A stretch of DNA of 64,000 bases from Malacoraja senta. Its lineage: Eukaryota. Both the position numbers and the translations under genes were made by a program. Numbering within the stretch: position 1 is the stretch's first letter; each line of letters begins with the position of its first letter. The DNA is taken from assembly GCA_038087875.1 (NCBI GenBank), contig CM075978.1, forward strand, positions 175,212,001-175,276,000, given 5' to 3'. Positions 25,923 through 62,032 of the stretch are shown in pieces. The notes beneath the pieces were generated by a model. It was not told where the DNA came from. It saw nothing but the letters and a program-made list of their open reading frames with translations, and ran no database searches.

Positions 25923-25977
25923 ATGTTTATGTTTGCCGTGCTGCTGTGTCTCTCGATCCTGCGCATGAGTTACACAG
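25923..25977 (+). CDS. Gene A exon 1, signal peptide MFMFAVLLCLSILRMSYT
   Basis: Hydrophobic leader ending in phase 1 at AG/gttaat, 170 nt upstream of the V exon. Confidence 0.8.
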
Positions 25978-28900
25978 GTTAATATATTTCCCTCTATTAA
26001 ACGAAAATAACAGGGAAAAGGTCAATCCGCAAAAAGTATAAGATGTACAACTCTTACTTTTCGGTCGAGCTATTTCAGCTATTTGGATTTTTATCAATCC
26101 GTTCATTGTCATTTCACATGTTTAACGTTTGTTTTTAATTCTGACAGTTACTGACGGGGCCTCCTCGTTCAGGGTGCGTCAGATTCCCGATAAGGTAACG
26201 AAAGTGAAAGGTGAAAATGTATCCCTATACTGTGCTTTCCCAATCTTCGGTCAGAAAGCACTGGTGGATGTATACTGGAAGAGAGACGGTCAAGAAGAGA
26301 CTTTGAATCCCATCGCAAACAGGAGGATGATAATGAACAATGTCCTGAAGGGATCTGCCGAATTACATCTGTTGGACGTGAGCTTCCGTGACTCCGGGAT
26401 CTATTATTGCAGTGTGAGAGGCGGGGAAGGAAAGAGTTCCAAAAGCAATGGCACGAGGATTATTGTACACGGTGAGTCTTACTTGATGTTTCGAATCACA
26501 ATACAAAAACAAATACGGTGTGCTACAGAGTTATAAAGTAGCAATAAACGGGCCCTTTCTCAGTCTGTACTAGAGGTTTTGCTCTAGCGATTTAAGTAAT
26601 TGATTTTTCGTGATTGTTGGACCATGAGATCTTTGGACAATCATTATTCTTTAATTTCATATCATTTAGTTATCATTTCTATGTGTCGGGTTAATTTTCT
26701 TGGCGGCCCCTCAACTGCATCCTGCGAAAGGAGTATAGATTAAAATTGCAGATGGTAGTCAATGAAATATAAACCATCATATGTTAGCGAGTATTGTAGC
26801 TGCAGTCGTTTAGTCAAAAAAACATTGCGTTCGAGTCTAGACCTGTGATATCCAGATGATGGAGCATTCTTGGGGGTTCACGAATTGAGCTCTTTGTTGT
26901 AGAATAACCATACTTGACCATTTATGTAGTTATTTCTAGTCCAAATAGTAAATGTTAACAAAACGTATGTTGATAGAAGAAACATTTGATGAATAGTGAG
27001 CGTGATATATTCTAACCGCAATCTTGTGTAAGACTATTCTTCCGTGATTTTAGGAAATCATAGTTTCAAAGAAAATGAATGATAAAATACGAGTCACAAC
27101 ACATCTGCGACTACAGAAATTAGTTTCTGCCTAGAACGTTATAGCGGAAGTAACAAAAGTTCATGGTGAAATTGTTAAAGAAATTCAGAGGTATAGCAAG
27201 GGGTGGTGGCGTATTAGTGTGGGTGGAAGACAAAACAACCCCATTAAATTATAAACGGGGGAAAATCTGAGAATAATGCAACAAGTCACAAAATATGTAA
27301 ACAAAGAAGATAAAAGTAGTATCAGAATTCAAATGATTAAATTGCAAATTGAGAATATTAATCAAAACGTTATCCGTCATTTTACGTCGAGTTTCATTGG
27401 AACTCAGCAGAGCGTCGAGTGGGAGAACAGAAGCTTCAGTCTAAATGATAAATACACGTCAGTGGCATACTCGATTGCTAGGTGGAAATATGCCAGAAAG
27501 CTTCACCCAACTGAATACGCTCTTTCCTCCGCACAGCGCACTATTTCAATCCCACATCAGCAACTACTGAATACACACATAAACGCTACTATACCTTGTC
27601 CAGTTTAAGTACCGTGACATGTATTGCGAACACGCCAAATACCTAAAGCATCCCATCAATTTCGAAACTTATAACTGCTCAAAATAGAATTCAACAACTC
27701 CGAAACATAGAACAGGAATAGACCCTTCGGCCCACAATTTCAGTGCCGAATATGGTGCCAAGTTGAAATAATATCCGCTCTTTGCGAGACATATCCTTCC
27801 ATTCCCTGCCTTTGCCTATTTAAAAATATCTAAGATGCCCCTATCGTATCTGGCTCTGCAACTAGGCATGATGTAGTTAAGCTGGAAGGGGTTTAGAGCA
27901 GATTTACGAGGATGTTGCCACGACGCGAGGGTCTGAGCTATAGGGAGAGCCTGAGCAGGCTAGGACGTTATTCCTTGCAGCGCAGGAGGGAAGAGGATCT
28001 TATTAAGGCGTATCTGATCATGACAGGAATAAATCTGGTATATGCATCGCCTTTTACCCAGAGTAGTGGAATCAAGACCTTGTAAACTAAACATTTCACC
28101 ACATTAAATTACAATAACCGAGGAAAAGAAGTTTGCGTCGCAGTGGAGAGATCAATTATGTGCCCGCCACCAGGAAACCGAAATTGTCAGTCCCATGCAC
28201 CCTTTCTTTCTTTCCGATCACTACTTGTGAAATATCCGCGGAAATTCTCTGGTGAGAGCACTTGCATAGATCAGTTTGGGATGGAGATCAAAGATTTACC
28301 CACCGATGTAGAAAGAATGCTTTTGTTACGTGGACTGGAGCATGATGGTGCCGAACATTTGCCGTCAGAGATGGTGTCCTATTTCATGTTGAGTAAATGC
28401 AGTTGCTAAACATTTCATTCTATTAAATCACCCCCCCCCCCCCACACACACACACAACCCCTATGAAAACTCGGCATGGTGCGGCAGCGATAGAGTTGCT
28501 GCCTTACAGCGCTTGCAGCGTCGGAGACCCGCGTTCGATCCTGACTACGGCTGTTGTCTGTACGGAATTTGTACGTTCTACCCGTGAACGCGTGGGTTCC
28601 CTCCGAGATCTTCTGTTTCCTTCCACACCCCAACGACGTAGAGGTATGGTTGTAAATTGGCTTGGTAAATGTAAAAAATATCCCTAGTGTGTGTCGGATA
28701 GTGTTAATATGCGGCAATCGCTGGTCGGCGCGGACTCGATGGGCCGAAAGGCCTGGTTCCGCGTTGTATCTCTAAAACTAAAACACTAAAAAGCAACACA
28801 ATCACCACAGTACAGTGGGCGTGCTTGATACAGGGCGAATTAAGAAGGTTATGGTCAGGGTTAGCGATTAAGTAAATATATGACAGGTGCAAAATGATGT

Positions 28901-31900: not shown

Positions 31901-34900
31901 CACCCATGGATGACACATAACCACATTTGTGGCTATCTATGTTCCCTTTTTACCTCTATTATGTACACTAAATATAAGGTGTCTTCGTCGTTTATCCTAT
32001 TAAAATTTATCAGACTACTTTTAAAAGTTCATCTTAAATACAACTCTCCAGAACATTTTCAAACTTGATCGAATCTTCCCACAGATTCCCAGCATTGTTT
32101 ATTGTTGCTCCTAAAACTACCTTTTTCACTCTAAACTTTATTTATTCTCCGGGTAATATTAGATACTACACCATATGTCAAACGTGCAAATTATTCTGCG
32201 CGTTGTCCCTCACAAGACTTTCACGCATACATAAAGCTGCTTCTCTCTTTCAGCATGTTTTACATATAATACAAAAATGACTCCCTTTACGATTTAATTA
32301 ACACCATTTTCCGTTTGATTGTACCACCTTGAATTCTGCTTTGTCTGGTGGAGCAACGTTGCGTTCCCAGCAGGTACCCAAAACCACCCTATCACCAACT
32401 AGAGAGAGGTCAAGTCCTACCATCTACCTTACTGGAGATTCTCAAACAATCTTCTTATCGGACTTTACGCGACTTTATCTTGAACTAAACGCACTCCGGT
32501 AATCCCGAATCTGTACAATGCGGACGGCTTAATTGTAATCATGTATAGTATTTTCGCTGATTGAATAACACACAACAAAAAGTTTGTCAATGTGGCTCGG
32601 TACACGTGATAATAAACTAAAACTGTTTAGCATAAAAAAAGAGAATCGCCCATGACAAGGAATTCCCAGAGGCAAGATAGCTTTATCAGAGATGACCGAA
32701 TGTTGTGTGCTCTATTTCACAGAGACTTGGCTCACCCCTCTTCCCCAGACTCAGCTGTCCATGCCGATAGTTTCTCCATTCGTCGCATGGACAGAATGAA
32801 GGCATTGGGGAAAGTGATAGGTGGTGACATCTGCCGCACATAGCGCTCAAATATAGTGGTTCTGTCCACCTGCGTTATAACGACGGTTTACTGTACTATA
32901 TATTTCCAACAACATAGATAAAATACTTTACTATTAAAGGAACGCACAAGAAGGTATGGTATTATCCATTTCGAAAGCGATTATATTTTCTTCTAAATAA
33001 ACATATAGGGGTACTAACTCCTTTGTCTTAAATTGTTTGCAGTGTCACCGACGCCTTTGAAGATTAAACAGATGAACATTCCTTCCCTGGCCCTAAACTG
33101 TACAACTGCTCCGTTTTTCCCGGAGGACTGTGAACTTACCTGGTATAAGGATGACCACAAAATCACTTCTGGAATAAGTACCACTAAAATACGGAACGGC
33201 GAGGGATTATACCTTGCTTCCAGCTTCCTGCATGTAGTGGATAGCCGATCGGTTTATAGTTGCAATGTGTCTCACGTCACCCTCCTGGTTCCGACCGTTG
33301 AAACTCACAGATTTCCTGGAATGGGTATGAGGTTTATATCTTCAATAACGTCCTGAGATATATCACTTTATTTATGTAAAGGCATTTCAGGAATTCCCAC
33401 CCAAAACTTACGCCAGACCGTTTTTAAGTATTTGAATGGAGATTGTGGGCAAGCCTTTGTTGTAATGGAAAGGTATGACAGTCTACGAAATTAGATACTT
33501 GTTAGTAAGAGATATCGCGCAAAGATGACAGTTGTGTTTGCATCTTTGTATAATAGCGGACGCTGGAACTCGCTGTTTATCTCCGATCATATAAAGCTCT
33601 ACAGCATGGAAGCAAGGCCCTTCGGCCCGCCCCGTCCACGTCAAGCAAATTGCCATTCTGGCCTAGACCCATCTCTCCGCATTTGACCATTTCCCCTCTA
33701 AATCTTTCTAATCCAAATATCTATGCAAAATTCCTTTGAAAATCACAATTGTATACGCTTCTGTAGCTTCCTCAGAAATAAATTGCCCCTTGTGCCCCTC
33801 TTAACCTTCCCTGTTGAGAATCCATTACCATGGAGAAAACGACTGTAAGCATTCGCTTTCTCTACGCCCATCATAATTTTATATACTTGAATTAGGTAAA
33901 CCTCCTATGCCTCCTATGCCTCATGGGAAGAGGTCACAACCTGCTCAGCTTCACCGGATAACTCCAGCCATGAATTCCAGGTAATACCTTGGTGAATCCT
34001 TTCTGCACCATTTCCAACATAATGATATGCTACGTATAGCAGGAAGACCAGGACTGCACACAGAACACCAACGAGTCGTCTCAGCAAATACTTATAAAGC
34101 TATTTCCCTGCATAATAAGGACATTGTTTAAATGTAAAATAATTTGCACTTATCGCTGTAAAGTTGGAGAGGGATGGTAATCCAACATGAAAACAAGTTG
34201 ACCAAACCAATAAACATGAGGACAGAGGCCAAGGGTAATTTAATAACATATGCGGTCATTAACTCAGATAATTTATTTTTTCATCGTTGCTGATCTGTGA
34301 TGGGATTCAAACAGAAGAGAAAAATGAAAATAAAGGAGAAATAAGAAAATTTGCGAACGGTCATACACACAATACGGAGTAGTGGTAATTCCGGATGATG
34401 AGCGTTCCTATGAACTGTCTGATCTGGTCTGTGCTCCCAGACATTTCTATGTTTTGTTAATTTTATGCGCGCAGCATAATTGATCTATAATTTATCCCAT
34501 TATTTTCATTCATAGAAACTGCCAGTTTTCATCCAATTTTCTGAAATTGGTGAAATCATTGTTCAGGTCTAAGGTTTTAGTCAATGCAGTTGGAAGAGAT
34601 TCCATAACGCTTTTTTGCGACTTCGTTGAGGTAGGACGAGAAGTAAAATAAAATGTAAGATGGATTACGATTTTAGGTACAATTGGAAATTGAGTTAACA
34701 TCTTCTAATTGACAGTTTTAGTTTCAGAGATACCGCGTGGCAACGGAGCCTTCAGCACACCGTCCACGCTGATCGTCGATCACCGGCATATAGTTCTCTG
34801 TTAGAACACTTTTTCATCCACTCCCTGGATACTGGCGACAACTTACAGAAGCCAATTAGCCTACACACTTGCACATCCATTCTATGTGAGATGTGCGAGG

Positions 34901-37900
34901 AGACCGTATCACCCGAAGAACACCAACGCAGTCACATTGAGAACGTACACATTCCACACGGACAGCATTCATGGTTAGGATCAAACCTGTGTCTCTCGCG
35001 CTGTGATACAGCAGGTCTACAGCTGCGCCACTGTGCTGCCGCAGCTCTCGTTTGCATTTGGTGTTTCCCAACTAAAATAGACCTCACCAAATATACTGTA
35101 GTAATTGCAATCTGAAAAGGTGAACTCTGGCGGGAGTACGCAGGTCCCTGGATGGTGTTAATGGAAGTTTTGAAAGGGCAAACATTATAATATCTATCGC
35201 TGAATGTGAAGTTACGGTGAGAAAGGAAATAGGTGTTCGCGGATACTGGAGAGTGAAGATGGTTTGTGGTAAAATAATGCCTTTGCGATAAAGAACGTAG
35301 AGAACAGCAGTCAGGCGGTCCCATGCTCGCTTAAAATCCAGAGCATGATTCCTTGAGATTAGAGGGTAGTAGCATAGAAGATGTTTACAAGAATGATCCC
35401 AGGAATCAGTAGGTTAAATTATGATGAACGTTTGTCGGCACTAGGCCTGTATTCGCTGGAGTTTAGAAAGAATGAGGCGGGACCTCATTGAAACATACAG
35501 AATAGCGAAAGGCTTGGATTGAGTGCATGAGGAGAAGATGTTTCCAATCGCGGGAGAGTTTAGGACTAGAGGTCATAGCCTCAGGATTAAATAATTAAAA
35601 GAAGGCCGTGGAGGCCGTCAGTGGATATGTTTTAGGCAGAGATAGATAGATTCTTGATTAGTACAGGTGTCAGAGGTTATGGGGAGAAGGCAGGGGTTAG
35701 GAGAGAGAGAAAGATCAGCCACGATGGAATGGCGGGTGGCCGAATGGCCCAATTCTACTCCTATCCCCTATAATCTATCCTGCAGTCTCGATTGCTGCCG
35801 CACAAATCCACACGTCTTTTAGATGTGGGAGAAACAGCAGCTCTACTAGATGTGTCGTTGTTGAGCACAAGGTGGTGATTTCCCTTCTCAAGGAACCCAA
35901 GGCCTGTTAAATCATCCTACTGAATGTTTCTCTGCCTCGGATTTGCTAAATGGCACTCATTGTTTTATTGGTCTGAGAGTTTCAGGTTACCAATTGAAAT
36001 AACGGGATTTTTTCGAACGCATTACTAATTGTGCAGCACTTAAAATTACTTAAGATTATTTACAGATTATCGGTGAATCTGTGGAATAATTTGCTACAGA
36101 AGGCCGTGGAGGCCGTCAGTGGATATTTTATAGGCCGAGATAGATAGATTCTTGATTAGTACAGGTGTCCGAGGGTATGGGGAGAATGCAGGAGAATGGG
36201 GTTAGGAGGTAGAGATAGTTCAGACATGATTGAATTGTGGAGTAGACGATTGACCGAATGGCTTAATTCTACTCCTATTGCTTGTGACCGTATGAGCTTA
36301 TGGACAAGGAGAAAGCTCTTCTTGTTCCAGGTGGGTGTTGGGACGAGATATCAGAGCAGCAGACTGATAAAAATTGAGCATGCACGACTGAGAACCAAAC
36401 TATGATGGAGGCAAACACGTTGAAGTAAAGGGTGCTTATAGAAACAGCGATACAACGTTTCAAGGTTTCAAGGTCAGTTTATTGTCACATGTACCAATTA
36501 AAGTCCAGTGAAATTTGCGATTATCAGAAAATGTCAAACAATCTCAGAAAATACATATAGGTAATGGATCCCGTTCACCTGGCTGAGTCGGAGGAAATGC
36601 GCTGGAAATAACGGTGCGAGTACGCGGGCTTGTAATTGGAATTAACGCAATAGCACAACCTCCTTGCTTTTACATGTTAGTCCTTTCTTGATAAATAATA
36701 AGATTCCCATTAGCTATGTACCGGCTTTAACTTTAGTTACCATTATGAAATTCTCTCGACGGGTACCCCCCATTGTATATTTTGTTCTTTTGTCTCATAA
36801 ACTCAATCGCTTAATCTTGGTTGTCTCTTCATCGTTTGGGTTTTCACAAGGTACAAATGTTAAATGTAAGTTTTCCACTTCCCCACTATTATGAATAATA
36901 AGCTCAATCGCAGCGACGGAGACTGTATACTTTTCTCCAGACCCAAAGCCAACGGTTCTAGTGTACATGTTTTGTGTAGTTAAAAGAAGAAAACAGGTGC
37001 TTGGGATCAGCTACCCTAATTGTACAAAACCTACTGTCGCCCCATTTCATTCCCTGCATAGTTCCATCAACTCCCCACAAAATGACCATCGCATTAATGT
37101 CGAGGATAGACACAAAATACTGGAGTAGCTGAACGGGACAGGCAGCGTCTTTGGAGAAAAAGAATGGGTGACGTTTCGGGTTGAAACCCTTCTTCAAACT
37201 TAAAGACTATGTATAGTGGCCAATTAACCAACAATCCTGCAAGTTGTTGAGATTTGGGAAAATGTTAGAGTACGCTACGGAAGTAACGTGATCACCGTGG
37301 GAATATAAAAACTCCAGAGAACACTGGAGGTCAGAATTGATCCAGGGTCTCTGCAGATGTGAAACAGCAGATTTACTAACTGCGAAGATGTGCCAGGAGT
37401 GGATCCAGAGTGTCACTTTCTCGGGCACATATGGTTCAAACTATTTTGAAAGCTGGGATAGTGCACGTTGAGATGGGAAATGTTTGAGATACTCAACAAT
37501 CAGACAGTATGAAGAGTAAAACAAAGCTCAATCTTTATAGGCTACTGATAGACATTTTTAAATTTTAGAATCCGTGTTAAGGATGAAATTTGATTGGAAT
37601 TTTGATTGGGCCGCTGAATAAAATAGAAGCGCAAGGCATTAACGGCAAGGGATTAGCACGGATTGAAGATTGGCTGACTGGCAGAGGGCAAATTGTGGCA
37701 ATAAAGGGGCCTTTTGTGGTTTGTTGCGGTTGAGTAGTGGTGTTCTGCAGGGGTCGGTGTTGTGTCTGCTGCATTTTACATTATATGTTAATGATCTGGA
37801 TGATTAAATTGATGGCCTTTTCGCCATTTTTCAGATGACACTAAGGTAGGTGCAGGGGCAGATAGTGCTGAGGAAGCAGGGAGTTTGCTGAAGGACTTGG

Positions 37901-39866
37901 GCAGTTTGGGAGAGTAGGTAAATAAGTGGCAGATGGAATACAGCGTAATAAAGTGAACATGTGGAACCCATTCTGTAATCCCTGGTTCGTGTACTCTGAT
38001 TATTTAATGAAGATAACCTCTGAAAAGTTATAATATTCAGCTTTTATTTTCTCTTTAGGAACACGCGTTAAACTCGTCTGCTTTCTGGCGGGTGGATTTG
38101 CCATATGCGTGTTAATTATTCCAGCGCTGGTATTTTATGCCAGGCGGTGCAAATTACACAGTACTGAAGGTAAGAAGTGACTTGATCCTTGTACGAAATT
38201 GGCAACACGGTGCTGGAGTAACTCTGCGGTTTGGCAGCATCTGAGGAGACAATGGATAGTGGACTTTGGGGGTTGAGTCATATGTGAAAAAGGGTCCCGA
38301 CCCGGAACTTCGGCTATCGATGCCCCCCGTAGATGCTGCCTAACCCGCTGAATTACTACAACACTTCGTGTTTTTTCCGAAAATAGCAATGTTCAGTTGA
38401 AGGAGCAACGAGGAGTGCTGAGATAACGATTTAAACCATCGGGCCTTTTCCCGGCCGCAGCATTCTGTGGGAAACAACATTTTAACCGGTTTAAGCCGTT
38501 GGTTGCAAAAGCATAGTTGTCGTTTGTTCTAAAAGAAGGCGCTTTTAAACACTAGGTGAAATGCTGCAAAGGTCGGGTTCTTTAAATAGGGGCAGTTCTC
38601 ACAGGAAAGCGGAAGCAAACCATAGGTTTTCAACTTTTCCGTGTGCTTTTCCTTAGCATTATGACTAACGAGGAGAGGATTTGTTCAAATAACAAGAATA
38701 GCATGACCGCAATGGTCAATTTCTGCAGCCGAACGAATCTGGCCACAACTCGATTTTTAACTGATTATCGGCAGGCAGGTTGTGACACGTTGATGATTAC
38801 ATTTGGTCGTTTTATTATGTTCTCTACTAGCCCCAGAAAACATTGAGGACAGAACTCACCACTTCGAAAAACAGGTAATTTTTTTGGTGGTATAACAAGA
38901 TATAACATATTGTATCATGTTCTGCTAATGGACGTCCGTGATTATAATCACATTGATGGGACAACAGGATGGATACACTTTTCGTGGAACTCTCTATGTG
39001 CCTCGTTTGCCATTTTCCTTATCCTCCCGAATTCTTATGATATAGTCCATGATCGTCAGCGGCTTGCACTTGCGTATCCTTCGAATTATCCTAAACAGTT
39101 TATGTCTAATCCGTCTGTGTCGCGCGGATTATTCACTTCGTGAAGCGTCATAACCGAGGCCCATCCTGTTCCAATTCAAAATTCACACGTCATATTTTTT
39201 GCGGAGTAGCTCGTACTGATATATGACGGAAAAACTGCTAACATGTCTGGGTCCAGAAATCGCGTCAACTCTATATTTTCCTCGAAGTCATCATCCAACA
39301 AACTTCCGGGCAGTGTTCTGCCCCATGCGTTTCACGATTTGGCTAATAGTTCACTAATTATTCAGGAAACTCAAACCAATTAGATACGAATTGCTTCCGT
39401 TTAATTTTATAGTAATCTCATCATAGGGAAGCAACCATATATAGCAATGGAATGACTGGTCGTGCAGACCCAGCTTCCTCCCGCTAATTTTATGTGTGCT
39501 CGTCTTCGCAGTTGTTTGTAAATGCGGAGTTTATTTCCTTTCAAATAAATGTTCCCTCAGTATCGGACGTACGCAGATTTGAACTTCAGCGGACAGAAGA
39601 AAACTACGAAAAACAGACGTCACGAAGAACAAACTACCTATGGCCAGGTAAGGTAAAAGCGGAAGTGTACTGCAAGGAAAATTCATGTACGTCGCCCATA
39701 TAGGGGAATCAGCAGCTCATAATCTCTGATTATTTTTCGATAGGTCAAAGAAGTGTCAGAAAATAAACTGACCTACGCAACTCTGGATCTCACCGCTTCT
39801 CTGAAACATCCAAGAACGGCGAAGAACAATGAAACAGAGTATGCAGGGATCATGATTTTTAAATAG
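25923..39866 (+). CDS. Gene A: SIRP-like IgSF inhibitory receptor, leader-V(J-type)-C1-TM-tail with 4 Tyr motifs, 341 aa; join(25923..25977,26148..26471,33043..33324,38059..38169,38831..38874,39561..39647,39744..39866)
   Basis: All six introns GT..AG, phases 1,1,1,1,0,0 compatible; summed length 1026 nt = 342 codons including stop; coherent domain order. Confidence 0.88.
26148..26471 (+). CDS. Gene A exon 2, Ig V-set domain with J-like G strand
   Basis: tttttaattctgacag acceptor, G/gtgagt donor; VSLYC, VYW, DSGIYYC, SNGTRIIVH. Confidence 0.95.
27870..28080 (+). mobile_element. Degenerate CR1 fragment in gene A intron 2
   Basis: ..agatttacgaggatgttgcca..gagggtctgagctatagggagag.. (RFTRMLP..EGLSYRE). 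Confidence 0.7.
28472..28790 (+). mobile_element. V-SINE (HE1-like), near full length
   Basis: tRNA head with B-box gttcgatcc, V core, tail ..gggccgaaaggcctggttccgcgttgtatctctaaaactaaaa. Confidence 0.88.
29270..30090 (-). mobile_element. Degenerate Rex1/Babar-type LINE 3' fragment
   Basis: Collinear, decayed similarity to 5906-6734 (ELQKVVDTA, SCLKKAAS, RRYRRLK). Confidence 0.75.
30545..30650 (+). mobile_element. V-SINE 5' fragment
   Basis: cacggtggcgcagtggtagagttgc..gttcgatcct..gtctgtacggagtttgtacgttct. Confidence 0.75.
31000..31800 (-). mobile_element. Degenerate CR1 fragments
   Basis: Decayed CR1 RT region (..FHTVR, DDLGKAVD) and CR1-type 3' end sequence. Confidence 0.55.
32390..32870 (+). 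mobile_element. Rex1/Babar-type fragments (3'UTR with aataaactaaaact tail, then an endonuclease fragment)
   Basis: 3'UTR shared with 41700-41930; PSSPDSAVHADSFSIRRMDR matches 8219-8911. Confidence 0.6.
33043..33324 (+). CDS. Gene A exon 3, Ig C1-set domain
   Basis: ttgtttgcag acceptor, G/gtatga donor; LNC..FFP, LTW, YSCNVSH (C1 YxCxVxH signature). Confidence 0.93.
33590..34090 (-). mobile_element. Degenerate CR1 3' fragment
   Basis: Reverse-complement CR1 3'UTR (ggcccttcggcc) and RT end. Confidence 0.6.
34850..35045 (-). mobile_element. V-SINE fragment
   Basis: Reverse complement of the SINE head (gcagcacagtggcgcagc..ggtttgatcct) and core. Confidence 0.7.
35360..36290 (+). mobile_element. 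Two CR1 3' fragments (about 35360-35780 and 36060-36290)
   Basis: GLYSLEFRR, FPIAGE.RTRGHSL, CR1 3'UTR ..gaatggc..aattctactcctat. Confidence 0.75.
37105..37200 (-). repeat. Penelope-type terminal repeat with near-intact hammerhead core
   Basis: Minus strand reads TTGAAGA-A-gggtttcaaccc-GAAA-CGTC-acccatt. Confidence 0.7.
37590..37960 (+). mobile_element. Degenerate CR1 RT fragment
   Basis: KIEAQGING..LARIEDWL.GR.Q.V.I.G, GVLQGSVL, F.DDTK. Confidence 0.7.
38059..38169 (+). CDS. Gene A exon 4, transmembrane exon (GTRVKLVCFLAGGFAICVLIIPALVFYARRCKLHSTE)
   Basis: cttttattttctctttag acceptor, G/gtaaga donor; uncharged hydrophobic stretch followed by RRCK. Confidence 0.9.
38190..38370. repeat. Degenerate head-to-head pair of Penelope-type terminal repeats
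   Basis: gctggagtaactc..gcagcatct / agatgctgcc..ctgaattac inverted arms around a decayed core (gtgaaaa-agggtcccgaccc-ggaac). Confidence 0.6.
38831..38874 (+). CDS. Gene A exon 5, 44-nt cytoplasmic linker (APENIEDRTHHFEKQ)
   Basis: ttctctactag acceptor, CAG/gtaatt donor; phase 1 to 0; same size and phases as gene B exon 61228-61271. Confidence 0.8.
39561..39647 (+). CDS. Gene A exon 6, cytoplasmic (YRTYADLNFSGQKKTTKNRRHEEQTTYGQ)
   Basis: ttccctcag acceptor, CAG/gtaagg donor; TYADLN ITIM-like motif and TTYGQ ITSM start. Confidence 0.85.
39744..39866 (+). CDS. Gene A exon 7, terminal (VKEVSENKLTYATLDLTASLKHPRTAKNNETEYAGIMIFK*)
   Basis: tatttttcgatag acceptor; ITIM LTYATL, ITSM TEYAGI, TAG stop. 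Confidence 0.88.
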   Translation, partial: VKEVSENKLTYATLDLTASLKHPRTAKNNETEYAGIMIFK

Positions 39867-42109: not shown

Positions 42110-44440
42110 TAGGAAATGAGACAGGGCAGGTGGTGGTGGTATGCGTTGGGGAGCACTTCGGGTACAGTGATCACAATACCATTCGTTTCAATATAATTAT
42201 GGAGAGGGTCAGAACCTAGGGTTGAGATTTTTCATTGGAGAAAGGCTAACTTTGAGGAGATGCGAAAGGATTTAAAAGGAGTGAATTGGAACATGTTGTT
42301 TTATGGGAAGGATGTAGAAGAGAAATGGAGGACATTTAAAGGTGAAATTTTAAGAGTACAGAATCTTTATGTCCCTGTTCGGTTGAAAGGAAATAGTAAA
42401 AATTTGAAAGAGCCATGGTTTTCAAGGGAAATTGGTCACGGTTCGGAAAAAGAGAGAGATCTACAATAATTATAGGCAGCATGGAGTAAATGAGGTGCTT
42501 GAGGAGTATAAAGAATGTAAAAAGAATATTAAGAAAGAAATTAAAAAAGCCAAAACAAGATATGAGGTTGCTTTGGCAAGTAAGGTGAAAGTAAATCCAA
42601 ATGGTTTCTACAGCTATATTAATAGCAAAAGGATAACAAGGAATAAAATTGGTCCATTAGAGAGTCAGAGTGGACAGCTATCTGCAGAGCCAAAAGAGAT
42701 GGGGGAGATATTGAACAATTTATTTTCTTCGTTATTCACCAAGGAGAAGGATATTGAATTATGTGAGGTAAGGGAAACAAGCAGAGTAGCAATGGAAACT
42801 ATGAGATTCAAAGAAGAGGAGGTGTGGACACTTTTGAAAAATATGAAAACCGATAAGTCTCCAGGTCCTGACAGGATATTCCCTCGGACATTGAGGGAAG
42901 TTAGTGTAGAAATAGCAGGGGCTATGACAGAAATATTTCAAATGTCATTAGAAACTGGAATAGTGCCGGAGGATTGGCGTACTGCGCATGTTGTTCCGTT
43001 GTTTAAAAAGGGTTATATGAGTAAACCTAGCAATTATAGACCTGTTAGTTTGACGTCAGTGGTGGGCAAATTAATGGAAAGGATACTTAGAGATAATATA
43101 TATAAGCATCTGGATAAGCAGGGTCTGATTAGGAAGAGTCAACATGGATTTGTCCCTGGAAGGTCAAACGACTAATCTTCTTGAATTTTTCGAAGAGGTT
43201 ACTAGGGAAATTGATGAGGGTAAAGCAGTGGATGTTGTCTATATGGACTTCAGTAAGGCCTTTGACAAGATTCCTTATGGAAGGTTGGTTAAGAAGATTC
43301 AATTGTTGGGTATTAATGGTGGAGTAGCAAGATGGATTCAACAGTGGCTGAATGGGAGATGCCAGAGAGTAATGGTGGATGGCTGTTTGTCAGGGTAGAG
43401 GCCGGTGACTAGTGGGGTGCCTCAGGGGTCTGTGTTGGGTTCACTGTTGTTTGTCATGTACATCAATGATCTGGATGATGGTGTGGAAAATTGGATTAGT
43501 AAGTATGCAGATGATACTAAGATAGGTGATGTTGTGGATAATGAAGTAGATTTTCAAAGTGTACAGAGAGATTTAGGCCATTTGGAAGAGTGGCCTGAAA
43601 GATGGCAGATGGAGTTTAATGCTGATAAATGTGAGGTGCTACGTCTTGGCAGGACAAATCAAAATAGGACGTACATGGTAAATGGTAACGAATTGAGGAA
43701 TGCAGTTGAACAGAGGGATCTAGGAATAACTGTGCATAGTTCCCTGAAGGTGGAATCTCATGTGGATAGGGTGGTAAAGAAAGCTTTTGGTGTGCTGGCC
43801 TTTACAAATCAGAGCATTGAATATAGAAGTTGGGATGTAATGTTAAAATTGTACATGGCATTGGTGAGGCCAATTCTGGAGTACGGAGTACAATTTTGGT
43901 CGCCTAATTATAGGAAGGATGGCAACAAAATAGAGAGAGTACAGAGGAGATTTACTAGAATGTTGCCTGGGTTTCAGCAACTAAGTTACAGAGAAAGGTT
44001 GAACAAGTTAGGTCTTTATTCTTTGGAGTGCACAAGGTTAAGGGGGGACTTGATAGAGGTCTTTAAAATGATGAGCGGGTTAGACAGAGTTGACGTGGAT
44101 AAGCTTTTCCCATTGAGAGTAGGGAAGATTCAAACAAGGGGACATGACTTGAGAATTAAGGGACAGAAGTTTAGGGGTAACATGAGGGGGAACTTCTTTA
44201 CTCAGAGAGTGGTAGCTGTGTAGAATGAGCTTCCAGTGGAAGTGGTGGAGGCAGGTTCGATTTTATCCTTTAAAAATAGATTGGATGGGTATATGGACGG
44301 GAAAGGAATGGAGGGTTATGGTCTGAGTGCGGGTAGATGGGACTAGGGAGAAGAAAGAAGAAAGAAGGGGAAAAAAGGTTCGGCACGGACTTGAAGGGCC
44401 GAGATGGCCTGTTTCCGTGCTGTAATGGTTATATGGTTAT
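42110..44440 (+). mobile_element. Young 5'-truncated CR1 (subfamily with (GTTATATG)n tail), with a few stops and frameshifts
   Basis: ORF pieces 42260-44223 (NYRPVSLTS, YMDFSKAFD, GVPQGSVLG, KYADD); near-identical to 54280-56364. Confidence 0.93.
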
Positions 44441-46400: not shown

Positions 46401-46439
46401 AAGACTGGGATTGGTAGAGCATGATCTTTGCCCGAAAAA

Positions 46440-48632
46440 TCAAGTTATACAGTATTGGCCAAGATTGACTGGCAATTAATTCTAAAAGGGTTGACGGTGG
46501 ATATGCAATGGAAGGCATTTAAAGACTGCATGGATGAACTACAAAAATTGTTCATCCCAGTTTGGCAAAAGAATAAATCAGGGAAGGTAGTGCATCCATG
46601 GATAATAAGGGAAATCAGGGATGGTATCAAAGCGAAGGATGATGCGTACAAATTAGCCAGAAAAAGCAGCATACTGGGAGAAATTCAGAGACCAGCAGAG
46701 GAGGACAAAGGGCTTAATTAGGAAAGGAAAAATAGATTATGAAAGAAAACTGGCAGGGAACATAAAAACTGACTGCAAAGGTTTTTATAGATATGTAAAA
46801 AGAAAGAGATTAGTTAAAACAAATATAGGTCCCTTGCAGTCAGAAACAGGTGAGTTGATCATGGGGAACAAGGATATGGCGGACCAATTGAATAACTACT
46901 TTGGTTCCTTCTTCACTAAGGAAGACATAAATAATCTGCCGGAAATAGTAGGGGACCGCGGGTCAAAGGAGTTGGAGGAATTGAGTGAAATCCAGGTTAG
47001 TCGGGAAGTGGTTTGGGGTAAATTGAATGGATTAAAGGCCGATAAATCCCCAGGGCCAGATAGGCTGCATCCCAGAGTACTTAAGGAAGTAGCTCCAGAA
47101 ATAGTGGATGCATTAGTAATAATCTTTCAAAACTCTTTAGATTCTGGAGTAGTTCCTGAGGATTGGCGGGTAGCAAACGTAACCCCACTTTTTAAGAAGG
47201 GAGGGAGAGAGAAAACGGGGAATTACAGACCAGTTAGTCTAACATCGGTAGTGGGGAAACTGCTAGAGTCAGTTATTAAAGATGGGATAGCAGCACATTT
47301 GGAAAGTGGTGAAATCATTGGACAAATTCAGCATGGATTTACGAAAGGTAAATCATGTCTGACGAATCTTATGGAATTTTTCGAGGATGTAACTAGTAGC
47401 GTGGATAGGGGAGAACCAGTGGATGTGGTGTATCTGGACTTCCAGAAGGCTTTCGACAAGGTCCCACATAAGAGATTAGTATACAAACTTAAAGCACATG
47501 GCATTGGGGGTTCAGTATTGATGTGGATAGAGAACTGGCTGGCAAACAGGAAGCAAAGAGTAGGAGTAAACGGGTCCTTTTCACAATGGCAGGCAGTGAC
47601 TAGAGGGGTACCGCAAGGCTCAGTGCTGGGACCCCAGCTATTTACAATATATATTAATGAACTGGATGAGGGAATTGAAGGCAATATCTCCAAGTTTGCG
47701 GATGACACTAAGCTGGGGGGCAGTGTTAGCTGTGAGGAGGATGCTAGGAGACTGCAAGGTGACTTGGATAGGCTGGGTGAGTGGGCAAATGTTTGGCAGA
47801 TGCAGTATAATGTGCATAAATGTGAGGTTATCCATTTTGGTGGCAAAAACAGGAAAGCAGACTAATATCTAAATGGTGGCCGACTAGGAAAAGGGGAGAT
47901 GCAGCGAGACCTGGGTGTCATGGTACACCAGTCATTGACAGTAGGCGTGAAGGTGCAGCAGGCAGTGAAGAAAGCGAATGGTATGTTAGCTTTCATAGCA
48001 AAAGGATTTGAGTATAGGAGCAGGGAGGTTCTACTGCAGTTGTACAGGGTCTTGGTGAGACCACACCTGGAGTATTGCGTACAGTTTTGGTCTCCAAATC
48101 TGAGGAAGGACATTATTGCCATAGAGGGAGTGCAGAGAAGGTTCACCAGACTGATTCCTAGGATGTCAGGACTGTCTTATGAAGAAAGACTGGATAGACT
48201 TGGTTTATACTCTCTAGAATTTAGGAGATTGAGAGGGAATCTTATAGAAACTTACAAAATTCTTAAGGGGTTGGACAGGCTAGATGCAGGAAGATTGCTC
48301 CCGATGTTGGGGAATTCCAGGACAAGGGGTCACAGCTTAAGGATAAGGGGGAAATCCTTTAAAACCGAGATGAGAAGAACTTTTTTCACACAGAGAGTGG
48401 TGAATCTCAGGAACTCTCTGCCACAGAGGGTAGTCGAGGCCAGTTCATTGGCTATATTTAAGAGGGAGTTAGATGTGGCCCTTGTGGCTAAAGGGATCAG
48501 AGGGTATGGAGAGAAGGCAGGTACGGGATACTGAGTTGGATGATCAGCCATGATCATATTGAATGGCGGTGCAGGCTTGAAGGGCCGAATGGCCTACTCC
48601 TGCACCTAATTTCTATGTTTCTATGTTTCTAT
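46440..48632 (+). mobile_element. Young 5'-truncated CR1 (subfamily with (TTTCTATG)n tail)
   Basis: RT 46834-47865 and 47899-48534 separated by a single TAA; very similar to 10891-11896. Confidence 0.94.
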
Positions 48633-54275: not shown

Positions 54276-54279
54276 GTAA

Positions 54280-56364: not shown

Positions 56365-56471
56365 ATCTATTCATGTATGTAACGACAGACTACCTTACAT
56401 AGATAATTGGTTAACATGTATTCATCTTTGATTCGTGAGTTATTCCATTAATTGGCTCTTGTTACACTTAC

Positions 56472-56582
56472 CTGGGCATATACCGTGCTTTCTTCAACAT
56501 ATCTGCATTTAGTTGATGCCTTTAGACCAGCGATGTTTAGAGTAGTATACGTTAACTTTGGATCACATTCGGATTGCACTGT
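56472..56582 (-). CDS. Gene B second 111-nt cytoplasmic exon (TVQSECDPKLTYTTLNIAGLKASTKCRYVEESTVYAQ)
   Basis: ataactttcag acceptor, CAG/gtaagt donor; ITIM LTYTTL, TVYAQ ITSM start; read-through gives VSVTRAN* (TAA 56450-56448). Confidence 0.83.
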
Positions 56583-59500: not shown

Positions 59501-62032
59501 TCATCGTCAAAGCATAATTTGGGCATGTGATAGAATGACTTTCATTTGGCAAGCTGAGTGCAGTTCCTGCAAATGTTCCAATTCCAGACACCTGACACCA
59601 TGCAGGTCTAATCAGTGCATTTGGTTCCCAACCCAGCTACCGTAAGCAGTTATTTCCTTCACCAGTGTACTATTCACTACGTAAACTGCAGCTATTCATC
59701 CCATCCATTACATAAGCGCATAGCTATCTTTTGATCTCCACGCCTAGAGAACAAAGTTTGAATGGGATCACTGCAACGTGTAGGTTCCTCTCCGAGTCAT
59801 ACACGTTCCTTACTTAGAAATTGGTTGCCAGTCCTCCCTCCTTGTTGGGTCTAAATCCCCCCAAGCTTCTACACGAAGCAATATGATAGCACCTTTATCT
59901 GAAGCACGAGAGAGATTCAAGATTGTGCCCTCTTATCACCACCTGAATTTCAGTTAGTGGTGTATTATGGATTATAGCCTTGCTTATTCACGATAAGTAA
60001 TGGGTTTTTTAATTAAAGCAAAGGCCATCAATTCTGTCGTTTCGATTAGATTTCCCCCTTTTTGAAACTGCATTTTGTTAATTGTAATTAGACAAAGCTA
60101 CGAACGAAGCACTCAGATACATCTTGAAATTACATTCAACTGTGATTCATTCGCTGCTCTGTGAAATGACGCATGTTGCACATACCTGGGTATATATTGT
60201 GCTCGGTTCTGAATATTTATCTTCGGCAGATCGCTTTGCATCAGCGATACGGAAAGCACTGTAAACAATTGCTTCATCGGGTTCCCAATGCTTAGTCTAA
60301 AAAACAGTATTTTGTTAAATTTCTTTCCTACGAATCAAAATATTTTCCATAAATTTACCACAATAGACAAAATTAAACATCGTACATTCCAGCAGCATGC
60401 CAAATTCCGAAGAAAAAAGCTATCGGAAAAGGAATGTATCGACTTGCATAGACCTTGATGACTGCTCTCCTTGAGAGGCGTGTGTACATTTGGTCTCTTT
60501 GACTGTGACGAGATCTTCCTATGATGGGGTGAGCTCAGTGAGATTTCAACAGACTGATAGACTGTGTCAAGCCTAACGTATGCATTGGGTTAAATTGAGG
60601 TAATTTCACTAAAATTTGGAAGCATGAGAAGGCAGCCAGACAATTGTTTACAAATCCACGGTATATGATGGTGTAAGGTTGTTCCCCATTGATGGCAAAA
60701 CCAGTACCAGGAACCATTGTAAAAGAATACGGGAAAAGCGATTTCAAACTGTAAAGGGGTCAGCGTTCTTCTCCAGGAGAGAAGAAAATCTCTCACAAAT
60801 CACTCGAATCCAATTTATGAAATATATTCAAAATGATGTGAACATTGTTATAATATGATAGAGAACTACAGCGCGAAACAAGTCTCAGGGATCAAGGGTT
60901 ATCGGGAGAAAGCAGGAGCGGGACAGTGAATTTGCAGGATGAGCCATGAGCGCATTGAACAACCAAGAAAGGTCGAAGGACCATATCGCTTATTCCTTCT
61001 CCTAATTCTACGTTTCTATCGCCATGCTTCCATTAAAAAACATCAAGTACACAGGTGGGCCTACAGTAGCTGTGTTTGCATTTGAAGGCATTACTGAGGA
61101 ATTTCATTTTGCTCCAATTTCATCACGCAAGTTGACGTAGAATCTTGTAATTATCCAAACGAAGGTAATAATTGGGAGGATGTCCGAGTGCTGTTTGAAC
61201 GTATCTGCAGTATTATACATATCTTACCTTCGTTGTATGCTCTGCACGTCCTTTCGATATTCTGCACGTCCCTAGAGGGAGGTAATTTAGAATAAAAAAC
61301 TTTTGGCCCATAGAAAGAATCGTAGTAGCCAGTAAATCTAGCAGCATATACATTTTTTTAACTTTTCAGTTTGTATACATGTATGTAGCAAAACTAATAT
61401 CACGATACCAATTGTTAAAAATCTACAGGATATTAGTACTCTTCGAGTTGTCGGAGCACATTCAATTACAGAATGTGTTTTTGCATCACCGACCCATTTT
61501 CTCAGACTCAACCCCTTATCCCACAACCTGCCCCAAAACACCAAGCATCTATCCTTCATGAACAAATCGGTGACTAACTCAAAAGTTAGCTTCCGAGAAA
61601 CGATGCACTCGGTGAGATGGGGCGTATGTACCACAGACCAGCTAACGCATGCAGTGTCCGATCCAATATAACTCTCCAATATTATTTTCTCCGGGATTCT
61701 CCCACTCTCCAAAGACGTACAGATTTGTAGATTAAATGGCTTGGTATAATTGTAAATTCTCCCTAGTGTGTGTACGATAGTGTGAGTATGCCGGGGGGTC
61801 GCTGGTCGGCGCCGACTCGGTGGGCCGAATCATCTGTTTCCGAGCTGTGTTTCTAACTAAAGTATTGCTGAATTTTGATTAATTCTGGTTAATTTCATAA
61901 CAATCTCGAGATCAAAAAGTTTGGGAGTCTTACCTTTACGTTTCACAATGAAAATAATGATTATAAGAGGTATCAATCCTGCTCCTATGCAACCAAAAAT
62001 CGAGTTAGGAAATGGATTATCGAGTAATGAAA
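56472..62032 (-). CDS. Gene B (partial): paralogous IgSF inhibitory receptor, TM plus cytoplasmic exons; join complement(61934..62032,61228..61271,60186..60296,56472..56582); ectodomain beyond 64000, last exon unresolved
   Basis: Canonical GT-AG boundaries, phases 1,1,0,0,0; exon sizes, phases and Tyr motifs parallel gene A. Confidence 0.82.
59170..59940 (+). mobile_element. Ancient, degenerate LINE (CR1/L2-type RT C-terminus) in a gene B intron
   Basis: PITLNFSGIAITESSNINSLVLIIDHK..INSRATRVG resembles LINE RT C-terminal regions. Confidence 0.55.
60186..60296 (-). CDS. Gene B 111-nt cytoplasmic exon (TKHWEPDEAIVYSAFRIADAKRSAEDKYSEPSTIYTQ)
   Basis: ctgttttttag acceptor, CAG/gtatgt donor; IVYSAF ITIM-like motif, TIYTQ ITSM start. 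Confidence 0.83.
60880..61020 (+). mobile_element. Degenerate CR1 3'UTR
   Basis: gggatcaagggttatcgggagaaagcagga..aaggtcgaagg..ttctcctaattcta. Confidence 0.6.
61228..61271 (-). CDS. Gene B 44-nt linker exon (GTCRISKGRAEHTTK)
   Basis: cctccctctag acceptor, AAG/gtaaga donor; phase 1 to 0. Confidence 0.8.
61735..61860 (+). mobile_element. V-SINE 3' fragment
   Basis: ..ctccctagtgtgtgtacgatagtg..gctggtcggcgccgactcggtgggccgaa..tgtttctaactaaa. Confidence 0.75.
61934..62032 (-). CDS. Gene B TM exon (xSLLDNPFPNSIFGCIGAGLIPLIIIIFIVKRK)
   Basis: ttattgtttacag acceptor, G/gtaaga donor; uncharged TM followed by KRK. Confidence 0.88.

Follow-up and report, generated by a model that had tools for sequence, protein, structure and literature searches.

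The cytoplasmic tail of human SIRP-alpha carries TYADLN in its first two-tyrosine unit, and LTYAxLD followed by EYAxI/V in its second. The two pairs fall at Tyr 429/453 and 470/496, spacings of 24 and 26 residues (PMC8631942, supplementary file 4); in most of the 14 receptors tabulated in that study the ITIM and the ITSM are 18–26 residues apart, and alanine at pY+1 favours SHP1 (PMC8631942). SHP2 is activated by bidentate binding to an ITIM and an ITSM, with the length of the linker acting as a constraint (PMC6994217). The mouse Sirpa gene comprises 8 exons, the cytoplasmic ones being 6–8 (PMC12324903), and two accounts of which mouse exon bears the ITIM conflict with each other (PMC9133620; PMC9071265). 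A passage of PMC3022915, citing Alley 1998, describes ITIM exons as 'always in phase 0' and Ig exons as phase 1.

In the window (the whole 64-kb stretch of skate DNA analysed here), we found four exons that each carry a cassette of two tyrosine motifs. All four are predicted to be tail exons of two neighbouring skate inhibitory receptor genes related to SIRP-alpha, here called gene A and gene B, which are arranged tail-to-tail and are of the V-C1 receptor type. Our main reading, to which we assign a probability of about 75%, is that each of these SIRP-alpha-like V-C1 tail exons encodes a two-tyrosine unit, most likely a bidentate site for SHP-1/SHP-2. The exons of the two gene models are as follows.

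25923..25977, plus strand: gene A exon 1, leader peptide, ending in phase 1; ATG and GT donor read
26148..26471, plus strand: gene A exon 2, V-set Ig domain, phase 1 to 1; Pfam V-set 8.4e-11
33043..33324, plus strand: gene A exon 3, C1-set Ig domain, phase 1 to 1; Pfam C1-set 2.9e-12
38059..38169, plus strand: gene A exon 4, transmembrane segment, phase 1 to 1; the same exon type is found in relatives
38831..38874, plus strand: gene A exon 5, 44-nt linker, phase 1 to phase 0; placed by candidate enumeration and sequence
39561..39647, plus strand: gene A exon 6 (A6), short cassette in the proximal position, 87 nt, 29 codons, AG/GT borders, phase 0 to 0
39744..39866, plus strand: gene A exon 7 (A7), terminal distal-type cassette with stop, 40 codons plus stop, phase 0
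61934..62032, minus strand: gene B transmembrane exon, phase 1 to 1; closely like the Heptranchias P0139 transmembrane exon
61228..61271, minus strand: gene B linker exon (predicted), 44 nt, phase 1 to 0; size and phase as in relatives
60186..60296, minus strand: gene B cassette B1, 111 nt, 37 codons, AG/GT borders, phase 0 to 0
56472..56582, minus strand: gene B cassette B2, 111 nt, 37 codons, AG/GT borders, phase 0 to 0

Gene A is predicted to be complete: its 7 exons encode 341 amino acids in one continuous frame with canonical splice sites, and this 7-exon model, through which the borders of exon 3 were set, was the only stop-free one. Exon 2 closes with a J-like end (NGTRIIV) that is joined in the germline. 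The predicted tail is the standard pairing of a proximal and a distal cassette and holds four tyrosines in two ITIM-type pairs: A6 reads RTYADL and then TTYGQ, with tyrosines at codons 4 and 27 and a Val at +3 that comes from exon 7; A7 reads LTYATL ... TEYAGI, with tyrosines at codons 11 and 33, and scores 34.2 bits against the distal-type profile and 28.1 bits against the proximal-type profile.

The V exon of gene A is 47–56% identical to proteins of Mobula, Scyliorhinus, Heterodontus and Cetorhinus, its best chondrichthyan V-C1 matches standing at 53–56%, and the closest matches of the ectodomain (V-set plus C1-set) were members of the V-C1 receptor family from sharks, rays and chimaeras, the groups across which this family is distributed. 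NCBI names the nearest chondrichthyan relatives mostly as SHPS-1/SIRP-alpha-like, and tail-restricted word searches for tetrapod SIRPA matched only chondrichthyan proteins. Among solved structures, the gene A ectodomain showed no detectable preference for SIRP-alpha over other V/C1 proteins: SIRP-alpha was absent from the best 60 PDB sequence-search matches listed, whether the V exon or the C1 exon was the query, and the tail exon returned zero PDB matches. Matches in the ESM Atlas to the tail of a relative were discarded (scores of 0.68 or below, to unrelated Tyr-motif adaptors). The naming of the chondrichthyan V-C1 SIRP-like gene family is inconsistent.

The V and C1 exons of gene B lie outside the 64-kb window. 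Both of its cassettes have tyrosines at codons 12, 28 and 35, with 23 residues from the first of these to the last. B1 (IVYSAF ... STIYTQ, with Thr at +3 given by the next exon) is the most divergent cassette copy; its best match is cassette 1 of Heptranchias P0139, and it scores 18.1 bits against the proximal-type profile as compared to 6.2 bits against the distal-type. B2 (LTYTTL ... STVYAQ) is followed by a GT donor, past which read-through adds VSVTRAN and meets a stop 8 codons on, at 56448-56450. Neither protein nor DNA profiles detected a further gene B cassette or a terminal exon in the 64-kb window, and the gene B tail is predicted to consist of two proximal-type copies, with a distal cassette undetectable. 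Homology between the intron flanks of B1 and B2 was considered (local alignment z about 6 against shuffles) and taken as weak because blastn against the whole window failed to recover the alignment. Sequencing runs X1, X2 and X24 were set aside as RNA evidence for gene B: their contigs follow the genomic sequence straight across the introns, with even depth and without splice joints, and therefore represent genomic DNA.

The first-pass annotation had described each of the four exons as a phase-0 unit with two motifs at a fixed spacing, and our translations and spliced models reproduced its phases and numbers, with AG/GT borders. The paired tyrosines are 23 (A6), 22 (A7), 23 (B1) and 23 (B2) residues apart, exactly as it had reported; both gene B exons measure 111 nt, which for B2 presupposes use of the GT donor; and in A6, B1 and B2 the exon ends 25 codons after the first tyrosine. 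Alignment of the cassette exons, which it had suggested as a check on common ancestry, gave z of about 12 for B1 with B2 and about 15 for B2 with A6 against shuffles, pointing to a homologous one-exon module.

Seven relatives, drawn from three other species (Callorhinchus, Heptranchias and Amblyraja), were splice-mapped exactly and revealed a shared order: a transmembrane exon, a linker exon, and one to three phase-0 cassette exons, the last of them terminal. The linker is 44 nt long in six of the seven and 35 nt in one gene, and the cassette exons range from 102 to 117 nt, most commonly 111. The exon plan of the window agrees with this, with a transmembrane exon of phase 1 to 1, a 44-nt linker of phase 1 to 0, phase-0 cassettes and, in gene A, a terminal cassette. 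Of 21 cassettes in the relatives, 18 space their tyrosines by 23 residues and the other three by 22; paralogues share exon size and spacing (22–23 across the family), as the earlier proposal of a common module had implied. The residues that separate the two tyrosines differ considerably between chimaeras and elasmobranchs through divergence, and the spacing has been altered in those three cassettes by one residue each.

The number of cassettes among paralogues, which the first-pass annotation had singled out for survey, ranges from 1 to 3. Cassettes cluster by position type across species, and extra cassettes are duplicates of either the proximal or the distal type. The distal type is duplicated in Callorhinchus P0160; the RefSeq model of Callorhinchus P0179, by comparison, combines two proximal-type cassettes of 111 nt with a distal one stopped after two codons, a layout that closely parallels gene B. 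One predicted Heterodontus (horn shark) isoform is without exactly one 37-aa cassette. Isoform pairs from Hemiscyllium and a second pair from Heterodontus were rejected as cases of cassette skipping, since their 37-/38-aa difference is the transmembrane exon. In ray relatives of gene A the distal tyrosine of the proximal cassette has been lost, so the pair is not always retained, and a third tyrosine at cassette position 28 recurs in B1, B2 and some relatives.

We compared the motifs with an ITIM consensus of I/V/L/S-x-Y-x-x-I/V/L (positions -2 and +3) and an ITSM consensus of T-x-Y-x-x-V/I (Thr at -2, Val or Ile at +3). Two of the four proximal motifs match the ITIM consensus (A7, LTYATL; B2, LTYTTL), the misfits being A6, with Arg at -2, and B1, with Phe at +3. 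One or two of the four distal motifs are off the textbook consensus: A7 fits (TEYAGI), A6 fits across the splice junction only (TTYGQ|V), B1 does not (TIYTQ|T), and B2 does so only with donor read-through. A phase-0 intron falls after Tyr+2, so that the +3 residue of the distal motif is supplied by whichever exon comes next: Val from gene A exon 7, Thr from a TKQG-type cassette, and Thr likewise in most internal cassettes of the relatives. The ITSM label that the first-pass annotation gave to all four distal motifs accordingly stands for A7 and, via the junction, for A6, and falls for B1, as it does in most of the relatives' internal cassettes; with the intron after Tyr+2 and the next exon usually beginning with Thr, its suggestion of SAP/EAT-2 binding is weakened.

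These data suggest a model in which each cassette is one phase-0 exon, usually of 37 codons, encoding a single two-tyrosine unit, in which a proximal xxYAxL-type ITIM is followed 22–23 residues on by a TxYAQ/TEYAxI-type motif. Once doubly phosphorylated, a cassette would most likely form a bidentate dock for the tandem SH2 domains of SHP-1/SHP-2, with the N-SH2 domain on the ITIM and the C-SH2 domain on the distal motif. Phosphorylation, binding of SHP-1/2 and an effect of copy number on signalling strength would follow by analogy with PD-1, SIRP-alpha and PECAM-1 (PMC6994217; PMC8631942). Two old cassette types, proximal and distal, parallel the two tyrosine pairs of SIRP-alpha, and because the exons are symmetric they have been duplicated, truncated or skipped in frame among paralogues, giving tails of one to three units. 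With the +3 residue coming from the next exon, duplication, skipping or reordering of cassettes would alter both how many docking units a tail has and which distal motifs result, ITSM-like or not. More tentatively, and with considerable doubt, the cassette might be an evolvable, possibly spliceable 'rheostat', its duplications and skipping reflecting selection on inhibitory strength in a paired-receptor cluster; duplications arising independently, of the proximal type in skate gene B and Callorhinchus P0179 and of the distal type in Callorhinchus P0160, would be read in this light, together with the predicted exon-skipped isoform.

The motifs might instead be chance matches in non-coding DNA, with no real exons behind them, and loose Tyr-motif patterns do arise about 1.7 times per window by chance as compared to 5 observed; even the strict ITIM..ITSM pattern, with 2 matches in the window against 0.25 expected (P(≥2) about 0.03), is weakly above chance. 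We consider this explanation extremely improbable. A cassette protein profile trained solely on cassette exons of other species and run on 2,025 reading-frame fragments of the window returned A7 (E = 2.3e-9), A6 (1.4e-8), B2 (1.7e-8) and B1 (0.018), that is, three exons at 2e-8 or better, and no fifth match below E 0.5 among these fragments; a DNA profile, in whose training the window exons were included, recovered the same four exons only. The exon size, phase and order common to the seven mapped relatives already contradict chance, as does the single continuous frame of gene A. For gene B the doubt is of another kind: B2 is directly flanked by a LINE and very high-copy repeats, and this, with the want of a terminal distal cassette downstream in the window, means that the gene may be decaying, B1 and B2 being relics whose equal size would say nothing of present function. 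B1 is also the weakest profile match, with neither of its motifs on consensus. Against this, the transmembrane exon, the linker, B1 and B2 all retain open frames and AG/GT borders, and the Callorhinchus P0179 model has the same two-proximal layout with no working distal cassette; on balance we think decay of gene B unlikely.

Real exons could also serve chiefly as sites for other SH2 proteins (SAP/EAT-2, Csk, SHIP or similar), their fixed spacing being kept for another partner or reflecting a mere absence of indels. The internal distal motif, mostly TxYAQ plus Thr and so off both ITIM and ITSM at +3, is consistent with such partners, as is the recurrent third tyrosine at position 28. The proximal motifs, however, have Ala at pY+1 and Leu at +3 like SHP1-recruiting ITIMs (PMC8631942), the terminal motifs are standard (TEYAGI, TEYAEI, SEYSEV), and a spacing of 22–23, inside the 18–26 of most tabulated SHP-binding receptors, has been kept despite the diverged sequence between the tyrosines. 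We regard other main partners as distinctly improbable, and continue to favour two-tyrosine units that dock SHP-1/SHP-2.

The two-pair tail design itself is not new, being of the SIRP-alpha type, and phase-0 ITIM exons are an old generalisation (PMC3022915); the finding is well supported yet fairly ordinary, and introduces no new signalling principle. What it adds is that cartilaginous fish have a SIRP-alpha-like two-pair inhibitory tail assembled from a conserved symmetric exon. The spacing of 23 in most chimaera, shark and ray cassettes, with deviations of at most one residue, offers comparative support for spacing mattering to the recruitment of tandem-SH2 phosphatases. For annotation, the tails of this family can be sought as a linker exon of 44 nt with phase-0 cassettes of roughly 111 nt after it, and the natural variants with 1, 2 and 3 cassettes could be used to probe the relation between unit number and inhibition.

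The closest likeness is to SIRP-alpha: a V domain at the N-terminus that closes with a joined J-like end, one or more C1-set domains and a transmembrane segment free of charged residues; a four-tyrosine tail in two pairs (in gene A; the pairs of gene B are both of proximal type); a TYADL-type first unit and an LTYAxL ... EYAxI-type second unit, as in the human protein; a gene layout of leader, V, C1, transmembrane and three cytoplasmic exons; and a short isoform without C1, present in mouse and predicted also in Mobula and Heterodontus. By contrast, SIRP-alpha is V-C1-C1 whereas skate gene A has a single C1 exon, its spacings are 24 and 26 whereas the skate and other fish cassettes have 22–23, and cassette number in the chondrichthyan family varies from 1 to 3. 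PD-1, BTLA, PECAM-1, G6b-B and the Siglecs likewise have an ITIM and then TxYxx(V/I) about 18–26 residues on, at exactly 23 in PECAM-1 and Siglec-9, equal to most chondrichthyan cassettes, and for PD-1 bidentate binding of the SHP2 tandem SH2 domains has been demonstrated (PMC6994217); however, these receptors carry one pair, unrelated ectodomains and no repeated exon unit. Going by the passage on exon phases quoted at the outset, PIR-B, salmon NILTs and other inhibitory receptors of the Ig superfamily have the same phases (ITIM exons 0, Ig exons 1); unlike in PIR-B and the NILTs, a single symmetric exon of conserved length holds the whole two-tyrosine unit in the skate, and an intron splits the distal motif after Tyr+2.

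Positions 39561-39866 hold two plus-strand exons separated by a 96-nt intron, and belong to a gene (gene A) whose predicted spliced model joins seven exons into a single 341-aa product without a stop. Gene B lies in the opposite orientation, and its transmembrane (TM), linker and two cassette exons (B1, B2) were found in the window. By cassette we mean one phase-0 exon coding a two-Tyr unit, a proximal ITIM-type motif followed by a distal TxYxx-type motif.

25923-25977, plus strand: gene A leader exon
26148-26471, plus strand: gene A V exon (Pfam V-set, 8.4e-11)
33043-33324, plus strand: gene A C1 exon (Pfam C1-set, 2.9e-12)
38059-38169, plus strand: gene A TM exon
38831-38874, plus strand: gene A linker exon, 44 nt, phase 1 to phase 0
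39561-39647, plus strand: gene A exon 6 (A6), translated as cassette YRTYADLNF...TTYGQ
39744-39866, plus strand: gene A exon 7 (A7), translated as cassette VKEVSENKLTYATLDL...TEYAGIMIFK, then stop
62032-61934, minus strand: gene B TM exon
61271-61228, minus strand: gene B linker exon, 44 nt, predicted
60296-60186, minus strand: B1 cassette by translation, 37 codons, Tyr at codons 12, 28 and 35
56582-56472, minus strand: B2 cassette by translation, 37 codons, Tyr at codons 12, 28 and 35

All four cassette exons start in phase 0 behind an AG acceptor, and three end at a GT donor, A7 ending in its stop codon instead. Translation reproduced the Tyr-to-Tyr distances of the first-pass annotation (23, 22, 23 and 23 residues in A6, A7, B1 and B2), its placing of the first Tyr, in three of the exons, 25 codons short of the end, and its size for the two minus-strand exons (111 nt, 37 codons each). 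Simple motif patterns are mildly enriched in the window (strict pattern: 2 observed, 0.25 expected). A protein profile trained solely on cassette exons of other species picked out, from 2,025 reading-frame fragments of the window, only the four exons (E values: A7, 2.3e-9; A6, 1.4e-8; B2, 1.7e-8; B1, 0.018), and a DNA profile, whose training set included the window exons, found the same four and no others. The proposed common ancestry of the cassettes was borne out by alignment, pairwise protein similarity far exceeding that of shuffles (B1-B2, 63 versus 18±3.7; B2-A6, 65 versus 17±3.2). The strong evidence that the cassettes exceed chance is comparative, and comes through the cross-species profile.

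Several further features of the window were recorded. An apparent similarity between the intron flanks of B1 and B2 was lost in a window-wide check. Both exons share a third Tyr at cassette codon 28, seven residues before the distal Tyr (B1, 60213-60215, DKYSEP; B2, 56499-56501, CRYVEE); it lies within no known motif, and recurs in cassette 1 of Heptranchias P0067, cassette 1 of Callorhinchus P0160 and one cassette of P0157. The sequencing runs that contain the gene B locus are genomic DNA, with contigs colinear across introns, uniform depth and no splice joints; one of them, X2, departs from the window sequence at four sites within introns (57378, 58141, 58296, 58672), as allelic or individual variation. 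In these runs assembler word depth rises from ~25 to 40,000-430,000 at 56200-56396, just downstream of B2, and at 61519-61912, in the intron after the gene B TM exon, marking extremely high-copy repeats. Many long LINE-type reverse-transcriptase/endonuclease reading frames lie on both strands (e.g. 493-4359, 19870-23580, 42197-44220, 46425-48531, 54222-56243), one stopping ~200 nt from the last gene B exon. Runs of N (128, 200 and 575 nt, at 5778-5905, 13313-13512 and 14947-15521) fall in the repeat-rich left part, outside both genes.

Used as the query against 1.84 billion representatives, the V exon drew many large multi-Ig proteins, together with a set of 220-450-aa proteins sharing 47-56% identity with it; those of the set that were looked up all belong to cartilaginous fish (Mobula, Heterodontus, Callorhinchus, Heptranchias, Mustelus, Amblyraja, Scyliorhinus, Cetorhinus, Chiloscyllium, Hemitrygon and others). 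The family is inconsistently named at NCBI, most often as SHPS-1/SIRP-alpha, and a literature search found no papers on it. The relatives' tails carry the same two-Tyr unit (e.g. ...LTYAALDL...NTEYAEI, ...VYATLDL...RTVYAQ|TKQG...). Seven relatives, designated by P numbers, were mapped exactly to their own genomic loci (two from Heptranchias, four from Callorhinchus, one from Amblyraja).

Tail exons of the seven mapped relatives
Heptranchias P0139: linker 35 nt; internal cassettes 111, 117 nt; terminal 81 nt (truncated cassette)
Heptranchias P0067: linker 44 nt; internal cassette 102 nt; terminal 174 nt
Callorhinchus P0154: linker 44 nt; internal cassette 111 nt; terminal 156 nt
Callorhinchus P0160: linker 44 nt; internal cassettes 105, 108 nt; terminal 129 nt
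Callorhinchus P0105: linker 44 nt; internal cassette 111 nt; terminal 165 nt
Callorhinchus P0179: linker 44 nt; internal cassettes 111, 111 nt; terminal 9 nt (distal cassette stopped after two codons)
Amblyraja P0076: linker 44 nt; internal 108 nt, then degenerate exons 87, 192 nt; stop in the last (192 nt)

In these relatives every cassette exon both begins and ends in phase 0, and length differences are confined to the parts upstream of the first Tyr or downstream of the second. Of 21 non-redundant cassettes from relatives, 18 have a Tyr-Tyr distance of 23 and 3 a distance of 22. Because these exons and spacings agree, shared exon size and spacing among paralogues hold from chimaeras to sharks and rays; the original observation was right and generalises well. 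Two gene models are irregular. Predicted P0157 (Callorhinchus XP_007904055) begins with two tail cassettes, followed by a V-C1-TM receptor with three, and probably joins two adjacent genes. At the P0076 locus (L004), two nearly identical C1 exons in the model are separated by 22 kb (14111-14416, 36887-37192), and a near-identical second cassette exon lies past the annotated gene end (43836-43943, 47825-47932); the model may have fused two gene copies or reflect an assembly duplication.

Cassettes cluster by position rather than by species, the proximal type ending in ...EE/ED-R-T-V-Y-A-Q and the distal type in ...N-T-E-Y-A-E-I. Scored against type-specific profiles made from other species (proximal/distal, bits), A7 leans distal (28.1/34.2), B1 proximal (18.1/6.2), B2 moderately proximal (29.0/24.3), and A6 is ambiguous (26.5/26.8). 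Judged by these scores, gene A has a predicted standard two-unit tail, and gene B two predicted proximal-type units with no distal one. Callorhinchus P0179 resembles gene B in having two proximal-type units, its distal cassette visibly knocked out by a stop: the terminal exon (9696-9760 of its locus, L007) reads TK, stop, then a recognisable distal remnant (..NNLTCDDLD..), a nonsense change having inactivated this inhibitory unit. In P0160 the distal type is duplicated instead. In ray relatives of gene A (P0170, P0185, P0008, P0186; Mobula, Hemitrygon) the proximal cassette retains SYADLNF and has lost its own distal Tyr (..TNALIIQ); P0187 lacks the proximal cassette altogether. Surveyed by profile matches, cassette number varies among family members (1, 2 or 3 units). 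Heterodontus isoform X3 differs from X1 in lacking exactly one 37-aa cassette, a predicted skip that stays in frame, as the symmetry of the exon permits; in other isoform pairs differing by 37-38 aa, the missing piece is the TM exon and not a cassette.

Given the residues observed, the ITIM+ITSM label fits only some of the units, and the SAP/EAT-2 idea shares that limit. Textbook ITIMs occur only in A7 and B2, A6 having Arg at -2 and B1 Phe at +3. The intron following an internal cassette lies two residues past the distal Tyr and splits the distal motif, so its +3 residue is supplied by the next exon. In A6 this residue is Val, which completes a valid ITSM (TTYGQ|V). In B1, as in most internal cassettes of relatives, it is Thr, which does not make an ITSM, and B2 would have Val solely under read-through of its donor.

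The proposal that duplicating a symmetric module tunes signalling strength is reasonable and largely restates a known design; that ITIM exons are in phase 0 is a generalisation of long standing (PMC3022915, with reference to Alley 1998). Each cassette, phosphorylated on both Tyr, would most likely engage the SHP-1/SHP-2 tandem SH2 domains as a bidentate ligand; by analogy, we infer phosphorylation, partner identity and a dose effect of cassette number. PD-1 engages N-SH2 through its ITIM and C-SH2 through its ITSM; the two motifs in linkage are far stronger activators of SHP2 than single ones, and the complex is constrained by linker length (PMC6994217). ITIM-ITSM distances are 18-26 for most of 14 tabulated receptors, 23 in PECAM-1 and Siglec-9, and 24 and 26 in human SIRP-alpha (Tyr 429, 453, 470, 496) (PMC8631942, supplementary file 4). 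SHP1 recruitment is linked to Ala at pY+1 of the ITIM (PMC8631942), and Ala there is the rule in these cassettes.

We regard the window genes as predicted members of a chondrichthyan SIRP-like family rather than SIRP-alpha orthologues, because ectodomain sequence comparison gave no specific likeness to SIRP-alpha and they have one C1 domain where SIRP-alpha has two. The architecture otherwise matches: the V domain is joined, the TM segment is uncharged, and both have C1 domain(s) and two pairs of Tyr. The mouse SIRP-alpha gene has eight exons, exon 5 coding the TM segment and exons 6-8 the cytoplasmic part (PMC12324903); exons 7-8 are reported to code most of the tail (PMC9133620), although a contrary statement places the ITIMs in exon 8 (PMC9071265).
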